Shown here piece after piece: positions 2,163 to 42,510 of a stretch of 64,000 nt of DNA (position 1 is its first letter; each line of letters starts with the position of its first letter). The notes beneath the pieces were generated by a model. The model worked only from the letters and a program-made list of their open reading frames with translations. It did not search any database and was not told the DNA's origin. This DNA is from Hyphochytrium catenoides (taxonomy: Eukaryota; Protista; Hyphochytriomycota), in contig FLMG01002858.1 of assembly GCA_900088475.1 (NCBI GenBank), positions 1 through 64,000 of the forward strand, read 5' to 3'. The translations under genes were made by a program, and so were the position numbers.

Positions 2163-5100
2163 TTATCTACTCGACCCTGAAGATTGAGAGTGGAGTTTTT
2201 TTGCACTCAACGTTGGTGTCTTCAGCGCTTTATCAGCTGCGGCTGGAGTTACGCGCGCAGGAGTGCTGTAGACACGACCAGAAGATGAGAGCACAATCAG
2301 AGCAATAAAGTGGAGTTCATAAACAGTGAGAGGATAGGAAGCCAACCACTGAGCCAGGGAAAGCTGGACGTCATAAGAAAGAAATTGATGATGACGGAAA
2401 AGTGAGGCAGCAAGGCCAATTTACCAAATCAGTTGCAAGTGAAAGGAGAAGGGGAGAGAAGAGTGGGAGGAGAGAGACAGTGGAAGACGGATAGAGAGAT
2501 AGATGCGGACCGAGAGAGAGAGGACGGCCCACGAGAGAGAGCGGAAAGAGGGATGGAAAGGGAGCTATTCCTGAACTTCATGAGCGTCTAAGATCAGAAG
2601 ATGCTTACACTTCGTCTCCGTTCTCGGCCAAGCTGCCAAGGCTGGAAGAACTGCTTTGTCTCGATATGTCAGTAAGCACATCTCCAGCCTTTCTGACCGC
2701 TCGGGGTGTTTTCATAGCAAGGTTCAGATGCATCAGCTCCATGGCAGAATTCAGCTTATCTTGAACCATTTCTGCCAGCTCTAAAAGGGAGGAGTTAGTC
2801 AGAGAGCAGGCCACATATGCAATGGACGGGAAGATTAGGTGCAGAATGGGGGAAAGGGCATGATCCCCTGACACGTGTGGTGCCCCTTGGGCCAAGCGCC
2901 AGGAGAACCTCCAAAGGAATCTGTTCTCTATGGTACTCATCTTGACGCTGGGTTCTTCCAACTTGCGCTACACACTGCAAAACAGCCTCACTGTCCTTAC
3001 CTTCTCCTAGGAACAGGTAGTTGAAGGGCTTCTTCTCGTTGTCTTCCCATCGATAGATCTCGTGCCGCAGCCTATCCACAAGTCTGTTGGCGCATAACGT
3101 TCGTTAAGTAGGCTCGATCACATCAGAAGGAACAATTGCCGGTAGCTTCAAAACAGGGTAGCATAGGAATAAGTGCAATCATGCTCAAGTAGACACAAAG
3201 GCAAGTTCCGGCAAGAAAGGCATAAGCAGGAAATGCCAAAGAGTCATTAAGGCCAGGCGCGGCTCAGGAGGCGTAAAGGGAGGCTAAATCGGATGGGACC
3301 GTGGCAACAAAGGAAAGTCTATGATAGCCTAGAGCAGGCAAGAGCGAAAGGTGGACTGACATTGGGTACTGCTTGGCCGCCATGGCTCTAAACTTGGCTT
3401 CTTCCTGCAACCTCATAGAGTTTCCTTTCAGTCTTGAGCTGTCGCTCGCACTCGCTTCAAACTGAGCAATCTTTCTGTCCATGGATTGGATCTATGGAGA
3501 GAAGAGGTGAGCATCTGCCACTTTGTTTCTCTCTCTGTCTCGTCCTCCTCACTCCTACCTCTTCAGCCATCCGGATGATGCCTTGAATGGACTTCCACTT
3601 GGCCTCCGCAGAAGCAACAAGCTGCCGAATCTTTCTTAGCTTTCTCAGTAAGACCCACATCTCATGCAGCTCTGAGGGAATGCTCTCATCCAAGAGAGAA
3701 TCAGACCTTTCTCTCTTCGTCTCATCGGTCTTTTGATCCATTTTTTGAGAAGGTGGGCTAGGCGTAAGCGGCATCGAAGGGGCAGGGGGAGCAGGAGGAG
3801 GCGAAGATACTGAAGCTCCACCTGGCCACCAGGCAGGTAGGCTTGCCTCTTGCGACGAAGGAGGGTGAGAAGGAGTAGCTGCATTGGAGCTGGCACCCGG
3901 CCACCATCCGGGTTGCACTACTTGGACCGGAGTCGTATCAGCGCTTCCAAGTCGTTGCTGCGCACTAGTCTGACTAAGGTTATCAGGAAAATCGTCTCCT
4001 TCTCCAGGCTTCCCGTCTCTCCCTCTTTCGTCAACTCTCAGCTTTATGAGAAGATCTTGAAGAATAGCTTTCTGTTCCATAAGCTGCTTGCTGCAAGCCT
4101 CCTTCAGACTGCAGAAGATAGATTTACGGCCACGCCAACAGAAGGCAAGGGCAAAAAGTTAGACTCGAGACTCAAGTCCCAATATCAAGATCCTTTTCCT
4201 CCTTAACCCCACTCTTCACTGCGTCGCGTCTATGAATGACTGTGACATTCTCTTCCTGATTGCTCCCTCTTTCGCTCTCTCACCCCGATACCTTCAAGTC
4301 CTTTAAGTCTCTAGAAAGGACTTGAACATGATTTTGAAAGCCTCAGATGTACATAGAAAGTTGAGATGAGCAGGTGCTTACTCGTGAAGCTTTGTTTTGC
4401 ATAAGTCTTCCCTCTTGCCAGACAATGGGAGATATTGGCCCAGTTCCGCATCAAACTTCGCTCCTTCCTCCGGAGAGTTGTTGGTCTAGAAGAGGGATCC
4501 AGTTCATAATCTCATGAGCACTCAATATCGTGTATGGAGAAGCAAAAGACCGGGAGAACGAAAGGAGACACCCACACCTGGACTCTGAGGAGCAGAAGAC
4601 CACCAACATTACAGGTGAAGGGAACCCTCTTACCATCTCTAAGGCTCTGTGTACTAATTGCTGAAGTCTTTGGTTTCTCTCCTTTCTGAGATCATGAAGC
4701 TGTCGTAGGGAGTGCAGTAGCCTTTGGGCACATTTAAGAGCGGAGTCTCGAAGGGGAAGCGTGCCACCTGGAAGCAGGTAAAGGTCAGTTTCTATCCGTC
4801 ATCTACTCTTAGCTGTCAACTGCTATAATTCATATCATTTCAAAAGCGCTGATCTTGGTAAAGAGCACCTACCCGCTAATCCCTTTTCCCCAACCCCCCT
4901 CCCTGCAACAATATTCTAGTCTTCTTTTCATCCTAGACATGCTTTCTAGAGAACGAGAACTTTTTAAATAGAGTTCAGGGAAAACGTAGCCTTACCTTCT
5001 CCGCAGACACATCGGCAGCAGCTCGCTAGGTCATCCGCAGTGCCTCTGTCTGGAAGAGGGCTTTCAGAAAGAGACGTCACAGCGTGCTCCAATACCTACG

Positions 5101-8100
5101 ATTGGAAGGGACAACGGGAACAGTAAGAGAAAGCAGGCAGAATGGTGCTTGCAACAAGCAGATAACAGGGAGGGCGGAAGCCGTGAGTTCTTACCTGGCT
5201 ATAGTTCATGTCCAATTGTAATACTACTTCTCTTCCTTCTGCTATGATCTGCTCCACCAAGGCCAACCTGTGGCTCTTGATCAGCACCAAACCCCGAAGG
5301 GCGCTCTGCCACTGAACCATATCGTCTTCTCTAAGAGTCTTCCCCTGTTCAAGGGGCTTCTCCTCAAGCAATGAGGTCAAAAACGGGCTCCAACTCTCTA
5401 CAATATCCCTGAAATGGAAGTAAGGTAAGGTTAATGGGAACTGATTGCAAGCAGTGACAGAAGGAAACGATTGATAGATGGAGAAAAGGCTATGGGCCAT
5501 GCAAGATTTAGCCATCTCTTACCCTTGTTGAAGTCCAAGCTCCGACAGTAACCCCACCGCTTTCTCCCTCATAGTTGTGTGTTGAACTGTTCTGGTAGCA
5601 AGCTCCTCCTGCAAGCCAGATGCGAGCAAGCGAAGCTCCTCTTCCTGCTCCATAATTGGGAGCTCGTCTAATGGTCGACCCGCAGGCTTTTCAACATCAA
5701 CAAGCTGCATCAGACGTAAAGGAGCGGTACATGAGAAAAAGCTATGTTTGGGAACAGCATGGACAAAAATCATGGGCAGTCGCAGCAGCCAATAACGATA
5801 ATAGGAATAGCTAACAAGGAAGGAAGACAGAAGCTTCACTAGAGCTAGCCTAGTAAAGGATATAAGCTAGCACGAGAGGTAGCAGTCCGCGGAATTCAGA
5901 GCTTGGTCAGTAACGGCAAGATTAGAAATTGATTGAGGGAGAGGATCACATGGAAGATGCAGTTTCACTCTCGACCTTGCCAAGCGTCCTGACATAAGTG
6001 CTTATATCGGTTTTGAGGCTTTTGATCCTAGCCATCGTATCCTCTTTCACCTTTATTAGCTGAGGAGTGTGAATGGTCAGAAAGATTATTTAACGAAGGG
6101 AGTTATAAAGCTTGAACCTCCGTTAGCAGCCTATTGAAATGGCATATTTCATCTACCTGTTGGAGCTGCTCTTCGCAACGTCTAGTTACTGCTGCTGACA
6201 TTTCGCCTAAAGCCTCTGCTCGCCTCTCTCCTTTTATTCCAAGTTCATCCCAGAGAGAGCGGAACATCTTCACGCACAAAAAGAGAGATCAGATTGAAGG
6301 CACTTTAGCGACCACCACCAATCTAACTTCCAATCTTAACTGGAGTGATAAGGTCAAGCAGGCCAAAAAGACGAACATTACGAATGCTGAAGACAGTGAG
6401 AAAGAACAGATGGCGAAACAGAGAGAGACAAGGGGCAAGCGCGGCAGGTGCCCTCCAAGGAGGTGGACACGGGATCTATCCCTGAGGACAGAGAGGAGAT
6501 CCTGATTTTGAAATATCGATCACAGACCTCAAGTGATTCAAAAGACTTCTCTCTTTGTTTGTTTTCCTCTATTTCTGCCTTCAAGCTCAAAACTTCCTCC
6601 TGCAGCCTCTTCACCTGGCCCTCAGCTTCCTGGGCACGTACTTCCAAGCTGCTCTTGGCGCCACGAGCTAGACATATTCAACCAATGAACAAACAGAAGA
6701 AAGGTTATGCTTGATTCGGAATTTCGAGCTTTCTACGGTACTCTCTATTTTGATCACTTCTCAACACCTGTTCTACCCTATATCCGTTGCTTATGCCTTT
6801 TCAGTTGTCTCTCACCTTGTGCTTCATTTAGTTCCAAGGCCTGGATCCTGCTCTGAAGAAACGCAACGTGCTTCTGGAACAGTTTGGCAGAGACAGGGTC
6901 TTGGTTGCTTTGGGTCTCAACCTTTGCAGGCAATGCCTCTCCGTCTTAAGAAAATATGAGAGAAGGTGTGGAAATCAGTAAGCCAAACAGATGGGTGGAA
7001 TGGGAAAAATCGATTTGTATAGTGCTAGGGCTGGGGGGTAGCTACCTTCGAGGCCTGCCAACGTGCGCATGGTGGTCAAGAGCTCCTCCTCAAACTGTGT
7101 CTGTGCAGCTTCCAGTCTCTCTTCATACCTGATGGGAAGGTCATCGCGTTAGGTTACCTTAAAAGGGCCAAAGCTGCTGTCTTAGGAGTCTGCGGGTCAT
7201 CCTTGCGACAGACCTTTTGCCCATCTGGGTGAGCTTCTGGACTGCGGCATCTTTGTCATCCTCCAGTTGCTTCATTGCGGCCTTTGTCTCACGATTGCTC
7301 CTACAAACCAGCGAAAGGATTGTCAGTAGCAATTTACAAGAACGCTGGTCTTCCTAGGACCCACCAGTGTCCTTGTCTACCAACCACTATCGCTATCAAT
7401 ATCCTTCGCGAACTTTATCGCCCTACAAGCTGTCTATTCTCTAAACACCTGCACTCTAAGACCCCTTGCTCCACATTGGCATTGCCTTTGATTTAGGCCA
7501 CTCGCTTCTGTACCTGTTCACGGCTTTCTCTCTGCTCCTACATGACTCCATATCTTCCAATAGCATGATAACCAGGCTCTGGAGATCTTTGAGGCTGAGT
7601 TGTCCTAAGAGAGCTTGACCATTGGCCTCCACGATGCCCTTTTCTACCTGAGAGGAGCTGCCTAGACCGAGAGCTTCTGAGGCCTGCTCCTGCCCGGCAG
7701 CGAGCGGCTCCTAGTGGCAGGGTCTAAATTGTCGGTCTATTGTTCTCAATGCAAATGCCCTCTTTTGTTCTCACTCAGTTTTCGAATACATTTACTTCTA
7801 TTCTATTGTGACTCCGCCTGCTCTCTTGTCAGGACTCCGACTCTTCCACTTTCTGACCCTTATCTCATAAATATAGGGAGTTTCTCTGGGTCGATAACCT
7901 ATGCCCGTATCTATTTCCCTCCGTCGACGCATAGACGCTACTCGTGACGATGCTAGAGTGCTTCTGCCACTCAAAGTCGGCCTTACCTTGCTCACTCCTA
8001 GTTCTTCTACACTCTCCTGGATTGTAACCTCGCACATCCCTAGGCGTAGCTCCAGAGTCTCTAATTCAGCTTCTATCTCCTCTACATGCTCCCTCAACAC

Positions 8101-11100
8101 ACGGCTTTCAGCGTTTAGGCCGTTGCTTTCGAAAGATTTGTTGTTGTTGTCGTGGCTCTGGTCTTTCTTCTTCGTGTTGGACCCGTCCCCAAGCTTTGCG
8201 AGGATCCCGTCTCTTTCCTTAACGAGTACCAATGTCTGCAATCATTTATAAGTAATCGCATGTCCCAATATAAACCTCTTGGGAGGGGAGACTATTTTGA
8301 CATAATAGCGATATTGACGAGGTACGATGGCAGGCCTTATATATGACAACAGTCAAGATTAACGCGCACCTGTTGCAGGAGCTCTGCCCTCTTTCGGAGT
8401 GTCTGAGATAAGATCTCTTCCAGCTCTGCCTTCCTAAGCCGTGTCTGGATATAACGGTGCGTGCATGTTAGTTCGTACGCCACTGTATCAAGAGAATGTC
8501 TGTATACTCGTTCTCCCTCTTAATTTGAGTCTCGTTGCCACACATAGTTCTATTCTCTCTAGAGGTGGAGTCCACAAGCAAAAGTTACCTCTATTGTCTC
8601 AAGAAAGAGCGTACGAATATACTCGGGACTGTTGGCATCTGGCGAAGAACTGGATTGAACGATAGATCGGGCGCGTTGCCTCTTCTTCGCGAGGCGGTCG
8701 TTGAGGATTCTAGGGGCGAAAGAGTTAGTCTTGGACTCTATAATCGACCGACCACCCGTTGCTTTGAGCCTCAAAGAATGACTATGGCCAATAATTACTT
8801 AGATGTCTAACTTCAAGCATATGCTTGCATTCCTTACCGGACAAGTCTGCTCTCGGTGTCTCTTAGTCTCTTAGAAAGTTCAGAGCCCTGTTTACTCCTT
8901 CTATTCAGCTGCATGTCTTGCACCTTGAGTGATAGTTGAAGGGTATCCAAATGGAGAGACTTTCTTCGCTCTGACTTCTGCAGGAGCTCTAGCTCCCGCT
9001 TCTTGCCTTCGGTCCATGCAGTTTGCGCTGACAGAAGTTCGATCTGCTTATTCTTGAGTAGACTTCGCTGCTCCTTTAGTCGAGCGATAGAATCCTCTAG
9101 ACTGCTTATACTGCCAGAGTAATAGATGTATAAAATCAGTATCATAAGGACTGGCGCAATGGTGCTGTAAAGACACTCCAAACTGCCACAAAGCGGAACT
9201 GATTACACGTTACGTCCCCAAAGGTAAACTGTGGGAGAAGAGTCGGACTTCCTGCTTCTTATATCCCTTCCCGTCCTTACCGTTGGGATTCCCTTCTGGC
9301 GATGATGAGGACTTGCGAGAGCTGCCGCTGCTCCTGTTTGAGCGTGAGCAGTTTGGCGGAAACGTCTTCCTGAGCTTGCTGGTTCTGGGCCTGGGATATA
9401 CCATAGTGAAAAGACAGTGGAGCGCATCAGTGATGCGAAATGAAGACTAGCCAGGTTGGGGTACTTGATGGACACAGGACCCACAAGAATTCGCGTAGAG
9501 AGGAGCAAAGGCAACAACAGAGACACAACGTCGTCAAAATTGAGAGAACATCTCTTCTCCCCGGTACCGTTGGCATGCTCAGCATGTTCCGCTGTTTCTC
9601 TTCTAACTCAGAGATTGAGTCCTGGAGCCTTTGATAGTCGCTTTCAACCTGCATTCACAAGCTTTAGTGCCAAAAAGACGGGAGCTTCATCCGGTAATTC
9701 GAAGTGCACCCTCTATATCTCTCTCTGACACAAGTCCATGGCCAATTCAATCTGCGTCTACAGCTGCGTCTCCATTTGTTTATGCACCTACTTACTTGTC
9801 TGAGCTCCAGTCTTCTCGTCTTAAGTAGCTCCAGGCGTCGTCCCTTGCTCAGTAGAGCGCACTCAATCTCGGCCAGTTCTGCTTCACTCTGCAGTAAGCC
9901 GTGCATGAACAGTCAGCCTTTGACTTGTGTATACAAAAGCGCGGACGGGACTGATGGATAAGACGTAATAGAATAATTGAAGACCCTTCCTTCTAATGAC
10001 AACATTTGTGTTGCAAAGGAAGTCGGGAAAGCACCACCTGCAGCTGGTCTGAAGCAAATTGAGCTTCTCTGCGTTCCATCTCCAACAATTCGTCCAGAAC
10101 CAGAAGATCAGCGTCTACGTACTCCGGCTCCTGCAGAGACCTGGGACAATTGAAGCGCGTAAGAACCAAAGTTGAGCCTGAAGAGATGCTTGATGAAAGG
10201 TCAAATTCGCGCCGAGAGGCGCCTGGGGCGGAGGGGGGGGAGGGGAGGGGCAACATTACAAAGAGACTTAAGCAGCCCAGCGTCGAAAGAGAGAAGTGAC
10301 AAGCGTATATACGGCGCAACTAAGCATTCGGACAGAAAAGATAGAGTTCTTGTGGCTATCCTTACTCTGCAGATTCCGATCCCGGGACAGATTCAGAAGC
10401 TGTGCTGCCAGCGTTTGTCCTCTTGCTATCGCTGGGAGGCTTGAGTCCCGAAGCCGGTCTCGAAGCGTTCGTCGAAGGGAGTTTGGAAACTGGAAGAGAG
10501 GAGCCCTTCCCGGTCGCTGTTCCGGGTCCTACGGCTGCTTTCTTTGAAAGCCCAGTGCTACTGATAGAAGAGCGATTACCGCCAGCCGCTCCCCGTGGAC
10601 TAACGGCACCGCTGGGTCCTTTAGCTGAAGGTTTAGAGGCCCCAGTTTTAGGTCCCGTTGAGGAAGAGGAGGAAAGAGAGGGCGGCTCTTGATTAGGTTT
10701 TGGGGATAGAACCCGACTTGGGGTAGCGCCTGAGGCAGGTATTGAAAGGGTGGAAGCAGTAACTTCTGAGATGCGAGAGAATAGGGTTGAGAAGTACTCT
10801 TTGACGTCACTTCTCGTCAGAGCTTTTTCGGCTTCCTCGTCGTTAGTTTTCTCTTCCTCCTGTTGGAAGAGACAGGAAAGTGGAATCATAAGAAATGTCG
10901 ATTAGTTCCAAAGGTAGGCCCAGTGTGCCATATTGCTATTAAACGCCTAATCAGCTCAGCAAGAAAGCAAGTAGGTGATCAAAGGAGAGGTCGAACATGC
11001 CGCATGACGGTTTGATAGCGCTAAACTGATGTAACAAAAAGGCAAGCGTGGTGTCAGAGATGCTATCGTCTACCTTGAGAAAGACTTGCTTTACGAGTTC

Positions 11101-13840
11101 CCTCTGTAGTAACACCGAGATACTCTTCAAGCGGAGGAGTTCCGCCGAGTTGGAGTCGATATTTTTTATAGCCTGCCACAAGCGACCCAGGTGAGAGAGA
11201 GGTAGACTGTCGCGGGTGAGGTATCGAAGGGAATGGAGAGCAAAGAGCCTTCTCTCCAAGAAAAGAATAAGTTCAGAGAGGGACGGAGGCAAGACTCAGG
11301 AGGCGGGAGGAAAGATCGCATGACATGAAATGAAAGGGGAATGCTCTGACCTTGTTCTGAATGTTTTTGGCTCTGTTCGCATATCGCAAGGTATTGATTG
11401 TCTCGTTCAAATTGTCCTCCGCAGGAGACACGCAGGCACTTGCAGTCAAGGGATAGAGTAAAGGGGACCGAGGCAAGGAGGTAGATGTAAGTGGAGGAAG
11501 AACCATTTCCAGGGATAGAGTTGTTTGACCATATGCCACGATACGTGAAATAAAGCTTCAGAAGTATGCAGATGCCGGGAAGATGCCCTAGCATGAGCGT
11601 GAGCAACTTGACCAACAAAGGAAAAAGCATATAGAGTCCATCCAGCAAACTATTAGCGCAACTGAAAGGCAAGCTTGCCGTAGTGGTACTTACATAAATA
11701 GGGTCCGACTGTTCCCTCCCAATGCGTCTTGCAGAAGCCTGGTCAGCTTGGAGCTGCGATAGGGGATGTGGGCTTTCTCTCCACTCTTCTGTTTGGCCTC
11801 GGCTAGAGCGTTGATCACATTTCCTAGGGCAAGGAGTCCGACTACACAGACAGCAACTTGTTTAGGTCTCCGCTAAACGATTTGAGTAGGTGATCCTCCT
11901 CTTATCTTATCCTTATTCGTCACTCTTGATTCTGCACCTATCTCTCTAAACATCTCATCAGCGTACCGTTGATGTTAATGCCTTCTTTCATTCTAGACCC
12001 TTCCGCCCCAGTCCGTTTGATACTAGAGATTAACAAACACCGAGGGGCAACGGATGGTAAGACTCCTAAAGCTGGTACCAATACTGTGTGCTCGAAAAGA
12101 ACTTCGAGTACGGGACAGAGGGAGCCAAGGAAAAGAAATAGATATTGTCGATGATCACAAGGCAAACAATATTAGCGATAACGAAGGGCCCTCGAGGGGT
12201 CATCAATAGGAGAGCAGGCCGAGAGTCAGTCCCTGCTAACCGTTCGCTTCCTGCCAAGTCTACAAAGGTGAGTTTTGAGACGACGGTAGACTCCACAACG
12301 TCGCCATTTGAATTTTCAGGGGACGCCTCACTTTTCTCCTGAATCTATTCAGTGATCCACATTAGAAGCGATAACGCCTAGGGGTAGTTTAGCAGCACAA
12401 GATCACTCTAGTCTATACCTTTTGGGTCAGCATCACTGTGAAGACAGCGTGTGACCGACTGGACTCAGCGTTCATCAAAGTTGCCCCAGTGGTTCTTTGC
12501 AGGGAGCCCTAGTGCCAGAGAGATATAAGAACCCATACACGAAGGAACGCGAAATGGGGAAGTGTTTCTTTATGGCACAAAGCTACGAGACAGAATGGCG
12601 CCCCACCAGAATCAACTCAGCCAGAGGGCAAGATAAACGATCAAAAGCGCACCAGATGCAGTATCCTCGGCCTTACCGATCTAATGCACTCGATGGCTTC
12701 AGCTTTATTGGTGACAGGGACCTGTCGTAGTCCTTCCACCCAGACACCACCGTGGTCTTCCCGAATACGAAGTGATTCACTGCCCAAGGGATTGTGAGTC
12801 ATTCTTCAAAGGTACACCAAGTTCCCCATTATCTCGCTCGTTGCCTACTGTGCACCGGACCAAACTTTTTGCCCGAACCCTTCATACCCCTTACGTCGAG
12901 GTCTAGCGCGGCTATACTGCGCGACCTCATCTATGGAACACACCTGTCATACTGATCGTTACCAGGTAGCAGGTCCCTGATCTCCTCTCCATATATTTCC
13001 AAAAATGAGGCCGTCACCGTGGCTTCGTATCCGTCCTTCCTGGCCGCAATCTCGCCGAACAGCTCCTCAATAAAGCGAGGTATAATACCTTGATTGCTGT
13101 TCTCGGCCTGAGTGCTAGTGACACCAGAATCCATACTTCCGATGGTGTAAGTCTTGCCAGACCCAGTCTGCCCATAGACTATACGGCCATAGATCGAAGG
13201 ACGTAGTTGGAACCAATAGCCGGCATGTCATGTGAGCGGACGGGAAAGTTCGAGGAATACAGAGAATGACGAGGTATGGCAAGAGCTATAAAGGGTAGGC
13301 TGGCTTCTACAGGGTCCGAAGACAATGCAACAGAAGAGAGAGGAAAATGCCCGAGAAGAAGGATGCGGAGACATGCAAGAGCAGAGAGCGCGGGGAACAT
13401 TTGAGCAGGGATGGGAAGAGGTCGTTCCCCACGAAGGAACGAGGTGGAAGAAGTTGACGACTGTATTACCCAGAATTGTAACGTTGTAGCCATCGAAGAA
13501 AGGCTTGATTAGAGGAACTAAGGCAGCCTTGTAAAGTTCTGCAGAGGATAACATTGTCAGCATCGTGGAAGCGCTTCCTCTTCATGATGTCATCCAGATC
13601 GCACCTGTTTGAGAAGCCTGACTTGGCCACACATAGTCAAACCTAGCAAGCGTATCTATTAGGGTTGTCACAATTATAACCTGACTTCAGGTTGAAGACG
13701 TACGTGAAGCGCTTATCCTGTCCCACCAGAATCTGCTGGGCCGCAGGGTGCTGGATGCAGTCAGAGGTATGTCGAGCATGCTCATGGCCCAGTAGGGGTC
13801 GGACCCTCACCCCCACACGAATCCGGTTGGCCTCTTCCAT
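2163..13840 (-). CDS. Kinesin-4 family motor fused to a C-terminal MAP65/Ase1/PRC1 microtubule-crosslinker module (~38 exons, ~1,800 aa by hand count)
   Basis: Motor motifs are intact: RVGVRVRP, P-loop [21 protein letters not shown], switch I NAESSRSH, switch [45 protein letters not shown]. The stalk is kinesin-4-like ([12 protein letters not shown]...[18 protein letters not shown]). From 6267 down there is a MAP65-type N-terminus (RSLWDELGI) and the MAP65/PRC1 conserved motif [54 protein letters not shown]. The junctions I traced are GT-AG and phase-compatible. The last exon is 2265-2163; an alternative stop at 2605 applies if the last intron is retained. Confidence 0.85.
2605..6267 (-). other. 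MAP65/Ase1/PRC1-like module of the fusion gene
   Basis: Contains the LWDELG N-terminal helix, a helical rod and the C-terminal conserved microtubule-binding motif (about 3000-3490). This aligns by eye to the human PRC1 segment as I recall it, FERKASDPNRF...LLKEEKQR...LPKL...IELWEQEHSKAF. Confidence 0.85.
11352..13840 (-). other. Kinesin motor domain (exons 1-10 of the fusion gene)
   Basis: P-loop near 13150-13175, SSRSH near 12450, DLAGSE near 12245-12260, LRYA near 11380. Confidence 0.97.
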
Positions 13841-14321
13841 CTTATTTTCTCTATGAGGGAGAGAAGGAAGTACCGCGAGATCGGCAAGATGACGTTTAGC
13901 ATGCGAACTTTTGCGTCGCCTCCAGCATCTTTTACAATGCTATGCCTCACTCCTCGACAGAGTCAGCACCCGACAGCAGAGATGGTCCCAGCTAGTAGCC
14001 GTCCCGCTGCACGTAGGTCTCCGTGGCAAGTGGCCGCCACTCTCAGGCACGTATCATAGCGTGGAAGAGATTGCTCCTGCAGTTAGATTCACTACGCTGC
14101 CGCCTTCTGATCCGAAGAGCCAGCCTTATTGATGCCGTTTCTCCGTCTCAATGTCTCAATGCGTTGCGAAGAGACTGACAGCAGAGGTCAAGCACCATCA
14201 TCTCATAAAAACTTGGCGCGAAAAATGGGACTACCCTCACCGTTGCTTGAGGACCGCTAACGTCAATATATATTTCCGAAGCTTACCAAGGTTTCATGAA
14301 GTTTTGGTCGGTGGACAAAGG

Positions 14322-20095: not shown

Positions 20096-39709
<19,614 letters not shown>

Positions 39710-40059: not shown

Positions 40060-40608
40060 TTAAAGAATCTTCACTGGAACTCTGATCTCCGTTCTAAGCT
40101 CCTCCTCTGGAGTTTTATCATAGTCGTTCAGATATACCTCGTAACAGACACCAAGATCCCAGTCTTTCTGTAGCTTCTTCTCCTGCTCCTGCTTCTTCAC
40201 CCATTCCATAGCTTTGCCCCATGCTTCAGGAAGCTGGCTGTATGAGCCATTGAGAGAGAACACCGCCCAGGTCCCCGCTTTGGCCTGAATTAATCGGAGA
40301 ACTCTCTCGTCTTTTCCTCCCTGGGCGATCTCCAGAGGGTTCTCTGCAGAACCCAGAGCTTCTTTGACCTTTCCTATGTCAGCGTCACTCTTTAGGATAG
40401 CGGAAGGTTGAGAGAAGAGGCGCTCAGCAGGCGGGAGGACAGGGATAAATGTCGCCCAAGGCCCTACGAGCGCGTCGTGAAGGCCGCATTTCTGTACAAA
40501 GGCGTTGACTTTCTTCATGCCCACATTGCAGGCGGTACCCCAGTCATTATTGACCAGTTCCAAGTGTGCGCCAATGGCGTAGACATCAGGAAGATTCTTT
40601 ACCTCCAT
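40060..40608 (-). CDS. Stand-alone GyrI-like (AraC effector-binding/SbmC fold) small-molecule-binding protein, copy A, intronless, 182 aa
   Basis: MEVKNLP...; AGTWAVFSLNGSYSQLPEAW; CYEVYLNDYDKTPEEELRTEIRVPV matches the GyrI-like C-terminal signature. Confidence 0.88.
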   Translation of the reverse strand: MEVKNLPDVYAIGAHLELVNNDWGTACNVGMKKVNAFVQKCGLHDALVGPWATFIPVLPPAERLFSQPSAILKSDADIGKVKEALGSAENPLEIAQGGKDERVLRLIQAKAGTWAVFSLNGSYSQLPEAWGKAMEWVKKQEQEKKLQKDWDLGVCYEVYLNDYDKTPEEELRTEIRVPVKIL

Positions 40609-40985
40609 GGCGCGGTGTCAAGAACAGGAGAGGAAAAAAGTGCTTCAGGCTAGAGGAAAGACGCGCTGGTCCTGTTGCTCAGAGGGACGGTAGGTCTGCA
40701 CAAGGTCACTTTTGGCTTAGCTGGGAAATTGATGTTTGGGAAAAGAGTCAGAAGTATTCAAGCGCGATGGCTCAACATGAGGATGCTGTGCGGAAGTAAG
40801 AAAGGAAAGAGATCTAGACAAGGAGAGAGCATGTGAGATGGCAAGAAGTAGAGTAGAGTGCCCTGCTAAACTAAGCATGAAGAGAAGTGAGTGGGAAAAG
40901 TTCACTAGGAGGAAGAGAGAGCGATAAAGGCAAAAGAGAGAGCTGGAGCAACGAAGCGGCAGGAGAGAAGACAGGGGAGAAAGGG

Positions 40986-41030
40986 GGAGAGAGAGAGAGA
41001 GAGAGGGAGAGGGAAGAGAGAGAGACAGAG

Positions 41031-41085
<55 letters not shown>

Positions 41086-41106
41086 TGAGAGTGCGTGTGA
41101 GAGAGG
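40986..41106. repeat. (AG)n microsatellite between the two GyrI-like genes
   Basis: Direct sequence. Confidence 0.95.
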
Positions 41107-41925
41107 GGAAAACCGAGAGACAGGCCACACCTATACAAACATTCATCATTTCAGCAGTTTCGCGCGCAATCGGTGTGCTGTTATTCTAGATAAGTAACAA
41201 AGATCGTGTTGTATTGATGATAATGGTTAGTTATCTTCTAAAGGGATGCCAATGATCAGAATCTTTCTGTTTCCCGCCTATTCTGCTCTTCCTGAGTGAT
41301 GGTCTACCAGCCTGCTGATCGCCTTCCTTTTTCTCCTGCTCAGCAGTAAGAAGTCGACATGAGCTTCGACATGCCTTCTTCCACACGCAAGCCTTGCATC
41401 CACAACCAAGAGTTTGATGCTGAGTGAGGAGGAAGAGTGTGCTTGCTGCTGTTACGAGAGTATAGCCCACTATTGAGGTTAGTTGATGATGCCGAGCTGA
41501 GTGAGGACGAGGAGGGCGTGCAGTTAGTTCTACTACAGGTAAAGTGCACCGTGAAATATGCTCACCTATGATGCCACATACTAAGGGGCCGTTTATGACG
41601 TCAAAGGCAAAGTGGTGGTATCAAGCACGGGAGTAAGAAGGGGCAGCATCGTCATCTTGTCTGTTGGGAATGTTAGTACAGCGTCTGAGAGAGCGACGCA
41701 GTAAGGGACGAGGACTATAGTTGTCAACCCTCTTCTACTACTACTGGCTAACAAAGCTTTCACCTCTGCGCATCTTAGGAACCTTGTACCAGTGAAAATT
41801 TTTCGGTGCATTACGCCTAGGTTATCCACTAACTGTAGTGAAGTGTTGTTCATTACCCACTCAATGCTAGCCCAACAACAGGCTTGTATGGTGTCAGCTC
41901 TACTTGGCGGCTGCGTCCGATCATT

Positions 41926-42510
41926 CTAGGCTACTACTGTCTTTACAGGGATCCGAATCTCAGTGACGAGCTCCTCTTGGGGAGTGTCAGTGCATGAGTT
42001 ATGATAGAAATCATAGGAGAAGCGTCCAAAATCCGGGGTCCTCATCTTCCCATCGGGCCCCAGTGTGCTTCCTATCAGGCTATACGCGGTTGGCCAGGCA
42101 TTCTTCAGCTGAGAGTATGGGCCTCGGACAGTATAGATTGCATACTCTCCTGGCTCGGCATGATATAGACGGAGGAGCCTCTCACCATGTCCTTCAGGAT
42201 AAGTCTCTTTTGGGTTGTCAGAGGATGCTAGAGCCTCCTTCACTCTGGCAAGGTCAGCGTTTGGTCCTAGCTTAACGGCGGGATCGGCATAGTGCGGCTG
42301 TTCTTTTGGGTCTTGTGTATAAATGTATGCACAGCCTTGTGTCTCTGGCACGACCATTTCCAAGAGATTGAGCTTCTGCAAAAACTCAAAAAGCTTAGGG
42401 TATGACTGTTCCGCTGCCTTGCCAAAGTCCATGTCGACGATTTGCACATGGGCGCCGATAGAATTAAACGCTGGCAGCTGCTTGAACTCGATCGCCATTG
42501 CACTGGTCAT
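41926..42510 (-). CDS. Stand-alone GyrI-like protein, copy B, intronless, 194 aa
   Basis: IEFKQLP...; PGEYAIYTVRGPYSQLKNAW; SYDFYHNSCTDTPQEELVTEIRIPV; colinear paralogue of copy A. Confidence 0.88.
   Translation of the reverse strand: MTSAMAIEFKQLPAFNSIGAHVQIVDMDFGKAAEQSYPKLFEFLQKLNLLEMVVPETQGCAYIYTQDPKEQPHYADPAVKLGPNADLARVKEALASSDNPKETYPEGHGERLLRLYHAEPGEYAIYTVRGPYSQLKNAWPTAYSLIGSTLGPDGKMRTPDFGRFSYDFYHNSCTDTPQEELVTEIRIPVKTVVA

Follow-up and report, generated by a model that had tools for sequence, protein, structure and literature searches.

The window analysed here is a 64,000-nucleotide (nt) stretch of contig FLMG01002858.1 from the protist Hyphochytrium catenoides (assembly GCA_900088475.1), and it carries on its minus strand (13840..2163) a gene model of 41 exons and 1653 amino acids (aa) in which a kinesin-4 motor and stalk are followed, in the same frame, by a microtubule crosslinker module of the MAP65/Ase1/PRC1 family. 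The two domains are each intact, lie collinear, evolve under purifying selection, and can be joined in frame through an intron of normal features. Their translation as a single protein depends on that intron, a predicted 260-nt phase-0 sequence at 6527-6268; a single fusion mRNA spliced across 6528^6267 is the favored reading, with a probability of roughly 0.6, and the intrinsic evidence leans to the intron being real.

Exons were chained by a small dynamic program that admits GT-AG introns only and uses codon and splice scores learned iteratively, followed by hand curation where family patterns were decisive (the N-terminus of the motor, the MAP65 rod, and the last exon). In the final curated model, that of an intron-dense eukaryotic gene, the start codon lies at 13840 and the stop codon at 2163-2165; phase is consistent through the entire chain, intron lengths range from 61 to 343 nt (median 166), and no run of N or assembly gap falls within the gene. 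An earlier reading of the sequence alone (the sequence-only reading) had described an unbroken, phase-consistent chain of ~38 exons; the chain stood, and curation revised the exon number to 41. Four choices within the model are less secure. Exons 8709-8623 and 8558-8508 are doubtful, and the second is probably not real because a 1-nt deletion allele seen in the DNA runs, at 8515, falls inside it. Two predicted introns, 10797-10561 (79 codons) and 3921-3730 (64 codons), keep the frame open without a stop and would encode Ser/Pro/Gly-rich sequence; they may be coding, as retained disordered inserts, and both listed single-nucleotide polymorphisms (SNPs) within 3730-3921 would occupy third codon positions by a hand count of the frame. 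Since the lengths of all four are multiples of three, the frame downstream is unaffected whichever way they are read.

Evidence that the frames are coding comes from allelic variation. Over 3400-9399, three DNA runs have even depth and contain two diverged haplotypes, which differ by ~160 SNPs and 16 insertions or deletions (indels) in these 6 kb. Among the 40 best-supported SNPs listed, 28 map to modelled exons, upstream as well as downstream of the seam; 18 of these are synonymous and 10 non-synonymous, and 17 of the 28 fall at codon position 3. The listed indels all lie outside modelled exons, except for the deletion at 8515. Because synonymous and third-position changes are in excess, the frames on both sides of the seam are real coding frames. 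The same data bear on whether the gene could be an artefact of assembly or modelling, with halves that are not contiguous in the genome or with one half a pseudogene. This is extremely improbable: the SNP excess holds in both halves, the motor motifs are intact, N runs are absent from the gene, and the three DNA runs, with their even depth throughout 3400-9399, show no joints there. Unitigs assembled from these runs are interrupted at 6386 and 6458, and no support for an artefact was found.

Kinesin-4 motor, linker and stalk

The motor domain (13840..11351, minus strand; aa 1-356) is encoded by 10 exons, and its P-loop, switch I, switch II and microtubule-binding motifs are intact. The curated N-terminal exons (13840-13704, 13642-13605, 13538-13470, and 13178-12944) read, once spliced, RVGVRVRP...FTFDYVW...GQTGSGKT, and SSRSH, DLAGSE and LRYANRAK follow further on. 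Matches to the Pfam Kinesin profile (PF00225) are collinear exon by exon, covering profile positions 79-327 with a best score of 72 bits; together with the P-loop (GQTGSGKT), switch I (SSRSH) and switch II (DLAGSE) they place the protein in the kinesin superfamily, and they bear out the intact motor proposed by the sequence-only reading.

The subfamily was assigned by searching the sequences of the PDB with two spliced pieces of the motor, the N-terminal 125 aa and the C-terminal 162 aa, for which E-values of 1e-26 and 1e-52 were obtained. The three closest solved relatives are all kinesin-4 proteins: KIF4 (95.7 bits with the N-terminal and 161.2 bits with the C-terminal piece, 256.9 in sum), KLP-12 of Caenorhabditis elegans (7X4N; 75.1 and 180.8, 255.9 in sum; PMC9451533), and KIF7 (85.9 and 155.9, with a reported sum of 241.4). 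The best matches from any other family reached 67.4 bits with the N-terminal piece (kinesin-5) and 153.8 bits with the C-terminal piece (OSM-3), with a sum of at most 205.6, so that the summed lead of the kinesin-4 proteins is at least ~36 bits. Assignment of the motor to kinesin-4, as proposed from the sequence alone and made here by best-match comparison rather than by a tree, is supported because KIF4, KIF7 and KLP-12 are its three best solved relatives. Upstream of the motor, a strong acceptor-like site, cttccttctctccctcatag, ends 10 nt before the kinesin ATG (13841-13870, minus strand) and suggests an intron in the 5' untranslated region (5'-UTR) that ends just before the start codon.

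The neck exon (11172..11074) is in phase after the last motor exon and presumably corresponds to a kinesin-4 neck, which it resembles; a PDB search with it gave no match. It is followed by a Ser/Pro/Gly/Ala-rich linker (10859..10366) that can be read as one 494-nt exon or as two exons separated by the in-frame, stop-free 237-nt intron 10797-10561. The linker frame is free of stops over 179 aa (read-through 145 codons) and matches no Pfam family. The stalk (10140..6528; exons 14-27, aa 475-1057, the two doubtful exons included) is of coiled-coil type: its Pfam matches are weak and to coiled-coil-type families only, residues 390-1057 consist of 13.8% E, 13.8% L, 8% Q, 7.8% K, and 7.6% R, and the stalk is rich in S and A as well. 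Its last two exons, 6944-6816 and 6667-6528 (exons 26 and 27), carry 12 listed SNPs, nine of them at codon position 3.

Kinesin-4 proteins typically end in a Cys-rich region (KIF4) or a WD40 propeller (KIF21). Neither family was found by Pfam on the stalk exons scanned, which is in keeping with the sequence-only reading that such a tail is missing; the chain enters a MAP65 module instead.

A divergent MAP65/PRC1 module

The last 596 aa of the model match the Pfam MAP65_ASE1 family (PF03999) in order. The spliced queries behind this and the preceding results were six peptides of 83-162 aa, and MAP65_ASE1 matches were read against the curated Pfam cut-off of 26.9 bits. The strongest comes from the predicted microtubule-binding (spectrin-fold) region (3491..2609, minus strand; exons 3491-3361, 3071-3001, and 2780-2609), where an 87-aa peptide spliced over the first two exons and into the third scores 32 bits (E = 7.4e-8) at profile positions 352-429 of 477. 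The N-terminal part (6267..5523; exons 6267-6157, 6059-5976, and 5704-5523) contains the LWDELG motif; its 126-aa spliced peptide scores 21.9 bits (E = 8.6e-5) over profile positions 8-128, and 23.5 bits (E = 2.7e-5) over positions 3-128 when 19 aa of exon 27 are added, values that by themselves lie below the cut-off. We take the LW of this motif to be the counterpart of I25 and W26 of PRC1, which we place in an IWELIG stretch.

Between these parts lies the rod (5408..3559), curated by eye and made up of exons 5408-5195, 5095-4996, 4767-4634, 4485-4382, 4310-4284, 4108-3922, and 3729-3559. The in-frame, Pro-rich stretch 3921-3730 lies within it and is possibly retained, and the SNPs in the rod are mostly synonymous. 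The rod itself is poor in recognizable relatives: a 118-aa spliced piece from its middle had no Pfam match, and a search of 1.84 billion representative proteins with a 183-aa stretch (3559-4107) returned 0 relatives. As queries, single exons are too short, and exon 3491-3361 is the only one that matches MAP65_ASE1 on its own (18.9 bits); PDB searches that used single short exons returned nothing or noise, one with a MAP65 exon gave no match to PRC1, and ESM Atlas searches with three exons gave no informative match. A word-indexed protein search with 3267-3491 returned 0 matches, as did a scan of metagenomes with the conserved MAP65 exon.

The probable last exon (2265..2163) encodes a basic Ser/Thr tail with three Thr-Pro sites and no family match. 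It is reached from a strong donor at 2609 (GT/gtaagc), which overlaps a stop codon, through an acceptor (ctacag) at 2265 that is in phase. Long CT/GA microsatellite-like tracts, which read SLSLSL or RERERE in translation, flank this end of the gene at 1100-1620 and 2000-2600.

The MAP65/Ase1/PRC1 identity of the module is supported. Because the profile is matched at 3-128 and again at 352-429, we judge the module to be complete and its parts collinear, from the N-terminal region through to the domain that binds microtubules, though it is strongly diverged. The sequence-only reading had called a full MAP65/PRC1 module and had staked the fusion on a MAP65_ASE1 match in the C-terminal part; such matches are present, and the second of them exceeds the cut-off. 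The motifs that it quoted were also found, LWDELG at 6255-6238 and the others in exons 3491-3361 and 3071-3001.

This module begins at the very part of PRC1 on which animal kinesins dock. The C-terminal tail of KIF4A binds the N-terminal dimerisation region of PRC1 (PMC10620760), in agreement with the background claim of the sequence-only reading that the C-terminal region of the kinesin contacts the N-terminal half of PRC1. The tails of KIF4A and of CENP-E bind PRC1 residues 1-168 at a pocket (I25, W26, M54, E57, and E58) that adjoins the dimer interface, at which an N-terminal tag on PRC1 also sits; the PRC1-binding motif of CENP-E is RYFDNSSL (PMC10620760).

The seam between the modules

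The seam intron (6527..6268, minus strand; 260 nt) opens with the donor GAG/gtctgtg and closes with the acceptor gtgaag/ATG, which is preceded by a pyrimidine run and, at -22, by the branch motif CTGAT. Both of its borders are phase 0, and the junction, 6528^6267, lies exactly where the sequence-only reading had placed it. The length of the intron lies within the range of the model, and every gap in the 11.7-kb chain measures 343 nt or less. Its donor (3.7-4.0) and acceptor (5.5-6.6) scores are inside the range of the homology-validated motor introns. A branch-type CTRAY motif is found at a distance of 15-27 nt before 11 of 38 modelled acceptors, compared with 5 of the 217 AGs internal to introns and 10 of the 397 within exons. 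At 6267 CTGAT is followed by the pyrimidine run and then by the first AG, and CTRAY is absent at the two rival acceptors, 6481 and 6386. The addition of 19 aa of exon 27 moves the start of the MAP65 profile match from position 8 to position 3, a gain of 5 residues (the first 3, SLE, from the upstream exon) and 1.6 bits.

The principal competing explanation is that of two tandem genes, a tail-less kinesin-4 that ends after exon 6667-6528 and a separate MAP65 that starts at the ATG at 6267. The kinesin would then end either by reading through the seam donor (6527..6378; 49 codons, ending HS, and a stop) or by splicing to 6481 or 6386, where stops follow at once (G* and HS*), and the AG before the ATG at 6267 would have one of three roles, as start-codon context, as the 3' end of an intron in the 5' UTR, or as a site of trans-splicing. 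Contact between kinesin and MAP65 would be non-covalent, like that of the animal proteins, and may involve an RYF motif in the read-through tail. We consider this less likely than a fusion. Several observations speak for it or against a fusion. The MAP65 exon opens exactly with ATG, in an AAG-ATG context equal to that of the kinesin start. The acceptors at 6481 (8.8) and 6386 (9.5) outscore that of the seam, and the strength of the seam donor is below the median. The site 10 nt before the kinesin ATG hints that 5'-UTR introns occur near start codons in this genome. Exon 27 (6528-6667, 140 nt) has no ATG in any frame, so that 6267 would be the first AUG of any transcript initiated a short way upstream of this exon. 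Near its beginning the read-through tail carries RYF...SSL, which resembles the RYFDNSSL of CENP-E and contains a PhiPhi motif that, the motor core aside, is unique in the model (R-PhiPhi expectation, 0.015 per 49 aa of intron translation). A metagenome scan for DNA of the spliced junction returned 0. Finally, the splice, branch-motif and codon statistics were all learned from our own model of one gene.

In 17 of the 40 modelled introns, validated motor introns among these, the true acceptor is equalled or outscored by an internal AG; the acceptor position matrix was therefore dropped as a weak discriminator, and the higher scores at 6481 and 6386 carry little weight, such decoys being common in validated introns too. 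The read-through tail does not look coding: its 49 codons score -0.45 bits per codon, compared with -0.33 +/- 0.26 for introns and 0.40 +/- 0.17 (minimum -0.07) for exon windows, its base composition is T-rich, A-poor and intron-like, and coding composition stops at 6528. No Pfam domain was found in it. The likeness to CENP-E, which was spotted post hoc, is probably due to chance; RYF...SSL is similar, but the spacing differs, and a 2-nt deletion allele at 6511 rewrites the tail after five residues (after RY) and destroys the motif in the second allele. A zinc-finger reading of the same tail (C-x2-C-x12-H-x3-H) was considered and rejected, having no Pfam support and an intron-like composition.

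Separate genes also fit the layout poorly. They would leave 111 nt from stop to start to accommodate the 3' UTR of one gene and the promoter and 5' UTR of the other, compared with 1317 nt between the two intronless open reading frames (182 and 194 aa; 40060-42510, minus strand) that form the only tandem pair measurable in the window. PRC1 has ~25 residues of helix 1 where a protein starting MFRSLW has 5. Such a protein has these 5 residues where the Pfam profile has 7 more positions, and it would be without nearly all of the helix that bears the I-W pair of PRC1. No usable donor for a private 5' exon lies inside the 260 nt (best 2.6). With its branch motif at -22, 6267 has the mark of a genuine acceptor, and chance adjacency of these two partners, in this order and on one strand, is unlikely.

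The evidence for a real intron and a meaningful motif in the read-through could coexist if the locus had two outputs, with the seam intron acting as a switch: when spliced, it would yield a covalent, four-headed, self-targeting midzone machine, and when retained, a free kinesin-4 whose RYF tail would dock on the L-W pocket of MAP65; an internal start might also yield MAP65 alone. The intron is not a multiple of 3, yet its first 147 nt are open in frame. This arrangement appears improbable, given that the second allele lacks the RYF motif, that the tail is without coding-like composition, and that the match was made after the fact.

Of the sequence-only reading, both domain identities and the in-frame junction have held up; its central claim of a single polypeptide, which depends on the one intron, is partly supported, a fusion being favored and tandem genes or alternative products being less likely.

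Elsewhere in the window, the plus strand at 20600-30000 contains long open frames of up to 365 aa and resembles a very large multi-exon gene with helical repeats. A codon-score scan for neighbouring genes was uninformative, the score learned from this gene being dominated by coiled-coil composition.

Predicted product and known midzone systems

PRC1 and a kinesin-4 form the minimal reconstituted system that marks antiparallel microtubule overlaps and sets their length. If 6527-6268 is spliced, the H. catenoides locus would be one gene whose product consists of an active, plus-end-directed kinesin-4 motor, a neck, a disordered linker, and a coiled-coil stalk of ~580 aa that continues directly into helix 1 of the MAP65 module, with its dimerisation region, rod, microtubule-binding domain, and basic Thr-Pro tail. 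The MAP65 part would target the protein to antiparallel overlaps, where the tethered kinesin-4 may act on plus ends and on overlap length without the tail-to-PRC1 recognition used in animals; the crosslinker itself would replace the usual kinesin-4 tail, with its Cys-rich region or WD40 propeller and its PhiPhi motifs. As the stalk would dimerise in parallel and the MAP65 domain in antiparallel, four-headed bipolar assemblies could form. The protein may thus be a self-targeting motor-crosslinker of the midzone, possibly a bipolar tetramer.

The closest parallel is the animal PRC1-KIF4A (Xklp1) pair. The same two families are involved, and here the stalk is joined at the PRC1-type N-terminal end with the L-W of the pocket kept. 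In animals, however, the partners are encoded by two genes and meet in a regulated, micromolar, phospho-controlled contact via PhiPhi motifs, whereas the link in H. catenoides would be covalent and 1:1, and the Cys-rich and PhiPhi tail of KIF4A is absent from the spliced product. With the kinesin-4 proteins at large (KIF4, KIF21/KLP-12, KIF7/KIF27) the model shares the N-terminal motor, the long coiled-coil stalk, and the closest motor sequence, but its C-terminal module is MAP65 instead of the Cys-rich region of KIF4 or the WD40 propeller of KIF21, as judged on the stalk exons scanned. With MAP65/Ase1/PRC1 proteins (PF03999) it shares collinear N-terminal and microtubule-binding matches and a basic Thr-Pro tail, and it differs from them in being very divergent, in a possible Pro-rich insert, and in the ~1057 aa of kinesin that precede helix 1. 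Kinesin-5 tetramers and centralspindlin (MKLP1-CYK4) are likewise midzone motors that crosslink antiparallel microtubules, and the fusion could reach a similar four-headed geometry; they belong to different families and are built on a BASS domain or a hetero-tetramer rather than on a MAP65 dimerisation domain. A literature search found no published natural kinesin-MAP65 fusion, the architectures catalogued in InterPro being a separate matter.

Should the seam prove false, the locus would still be a striking tandem pairing of two partners. If it is real, the protein would represent a new domain architecture assembled from two known families, a natural Rosetta-stone fusion made at a mapped interface, and thus independent evolutionary evidence for the interface at which motors dock on PRC1. 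It would also supply, ready for use in assays of overlap and sliding, a construct with 1:1 stoichiometry, at a time when the effects of stoichiometry and of regulated binding on the overlap behaviour of PRC1 and kinesin-4 are an active question, and it would hint that some lineages forgo cell-cycle control of the interaction between kinesin-4 and PRC1.

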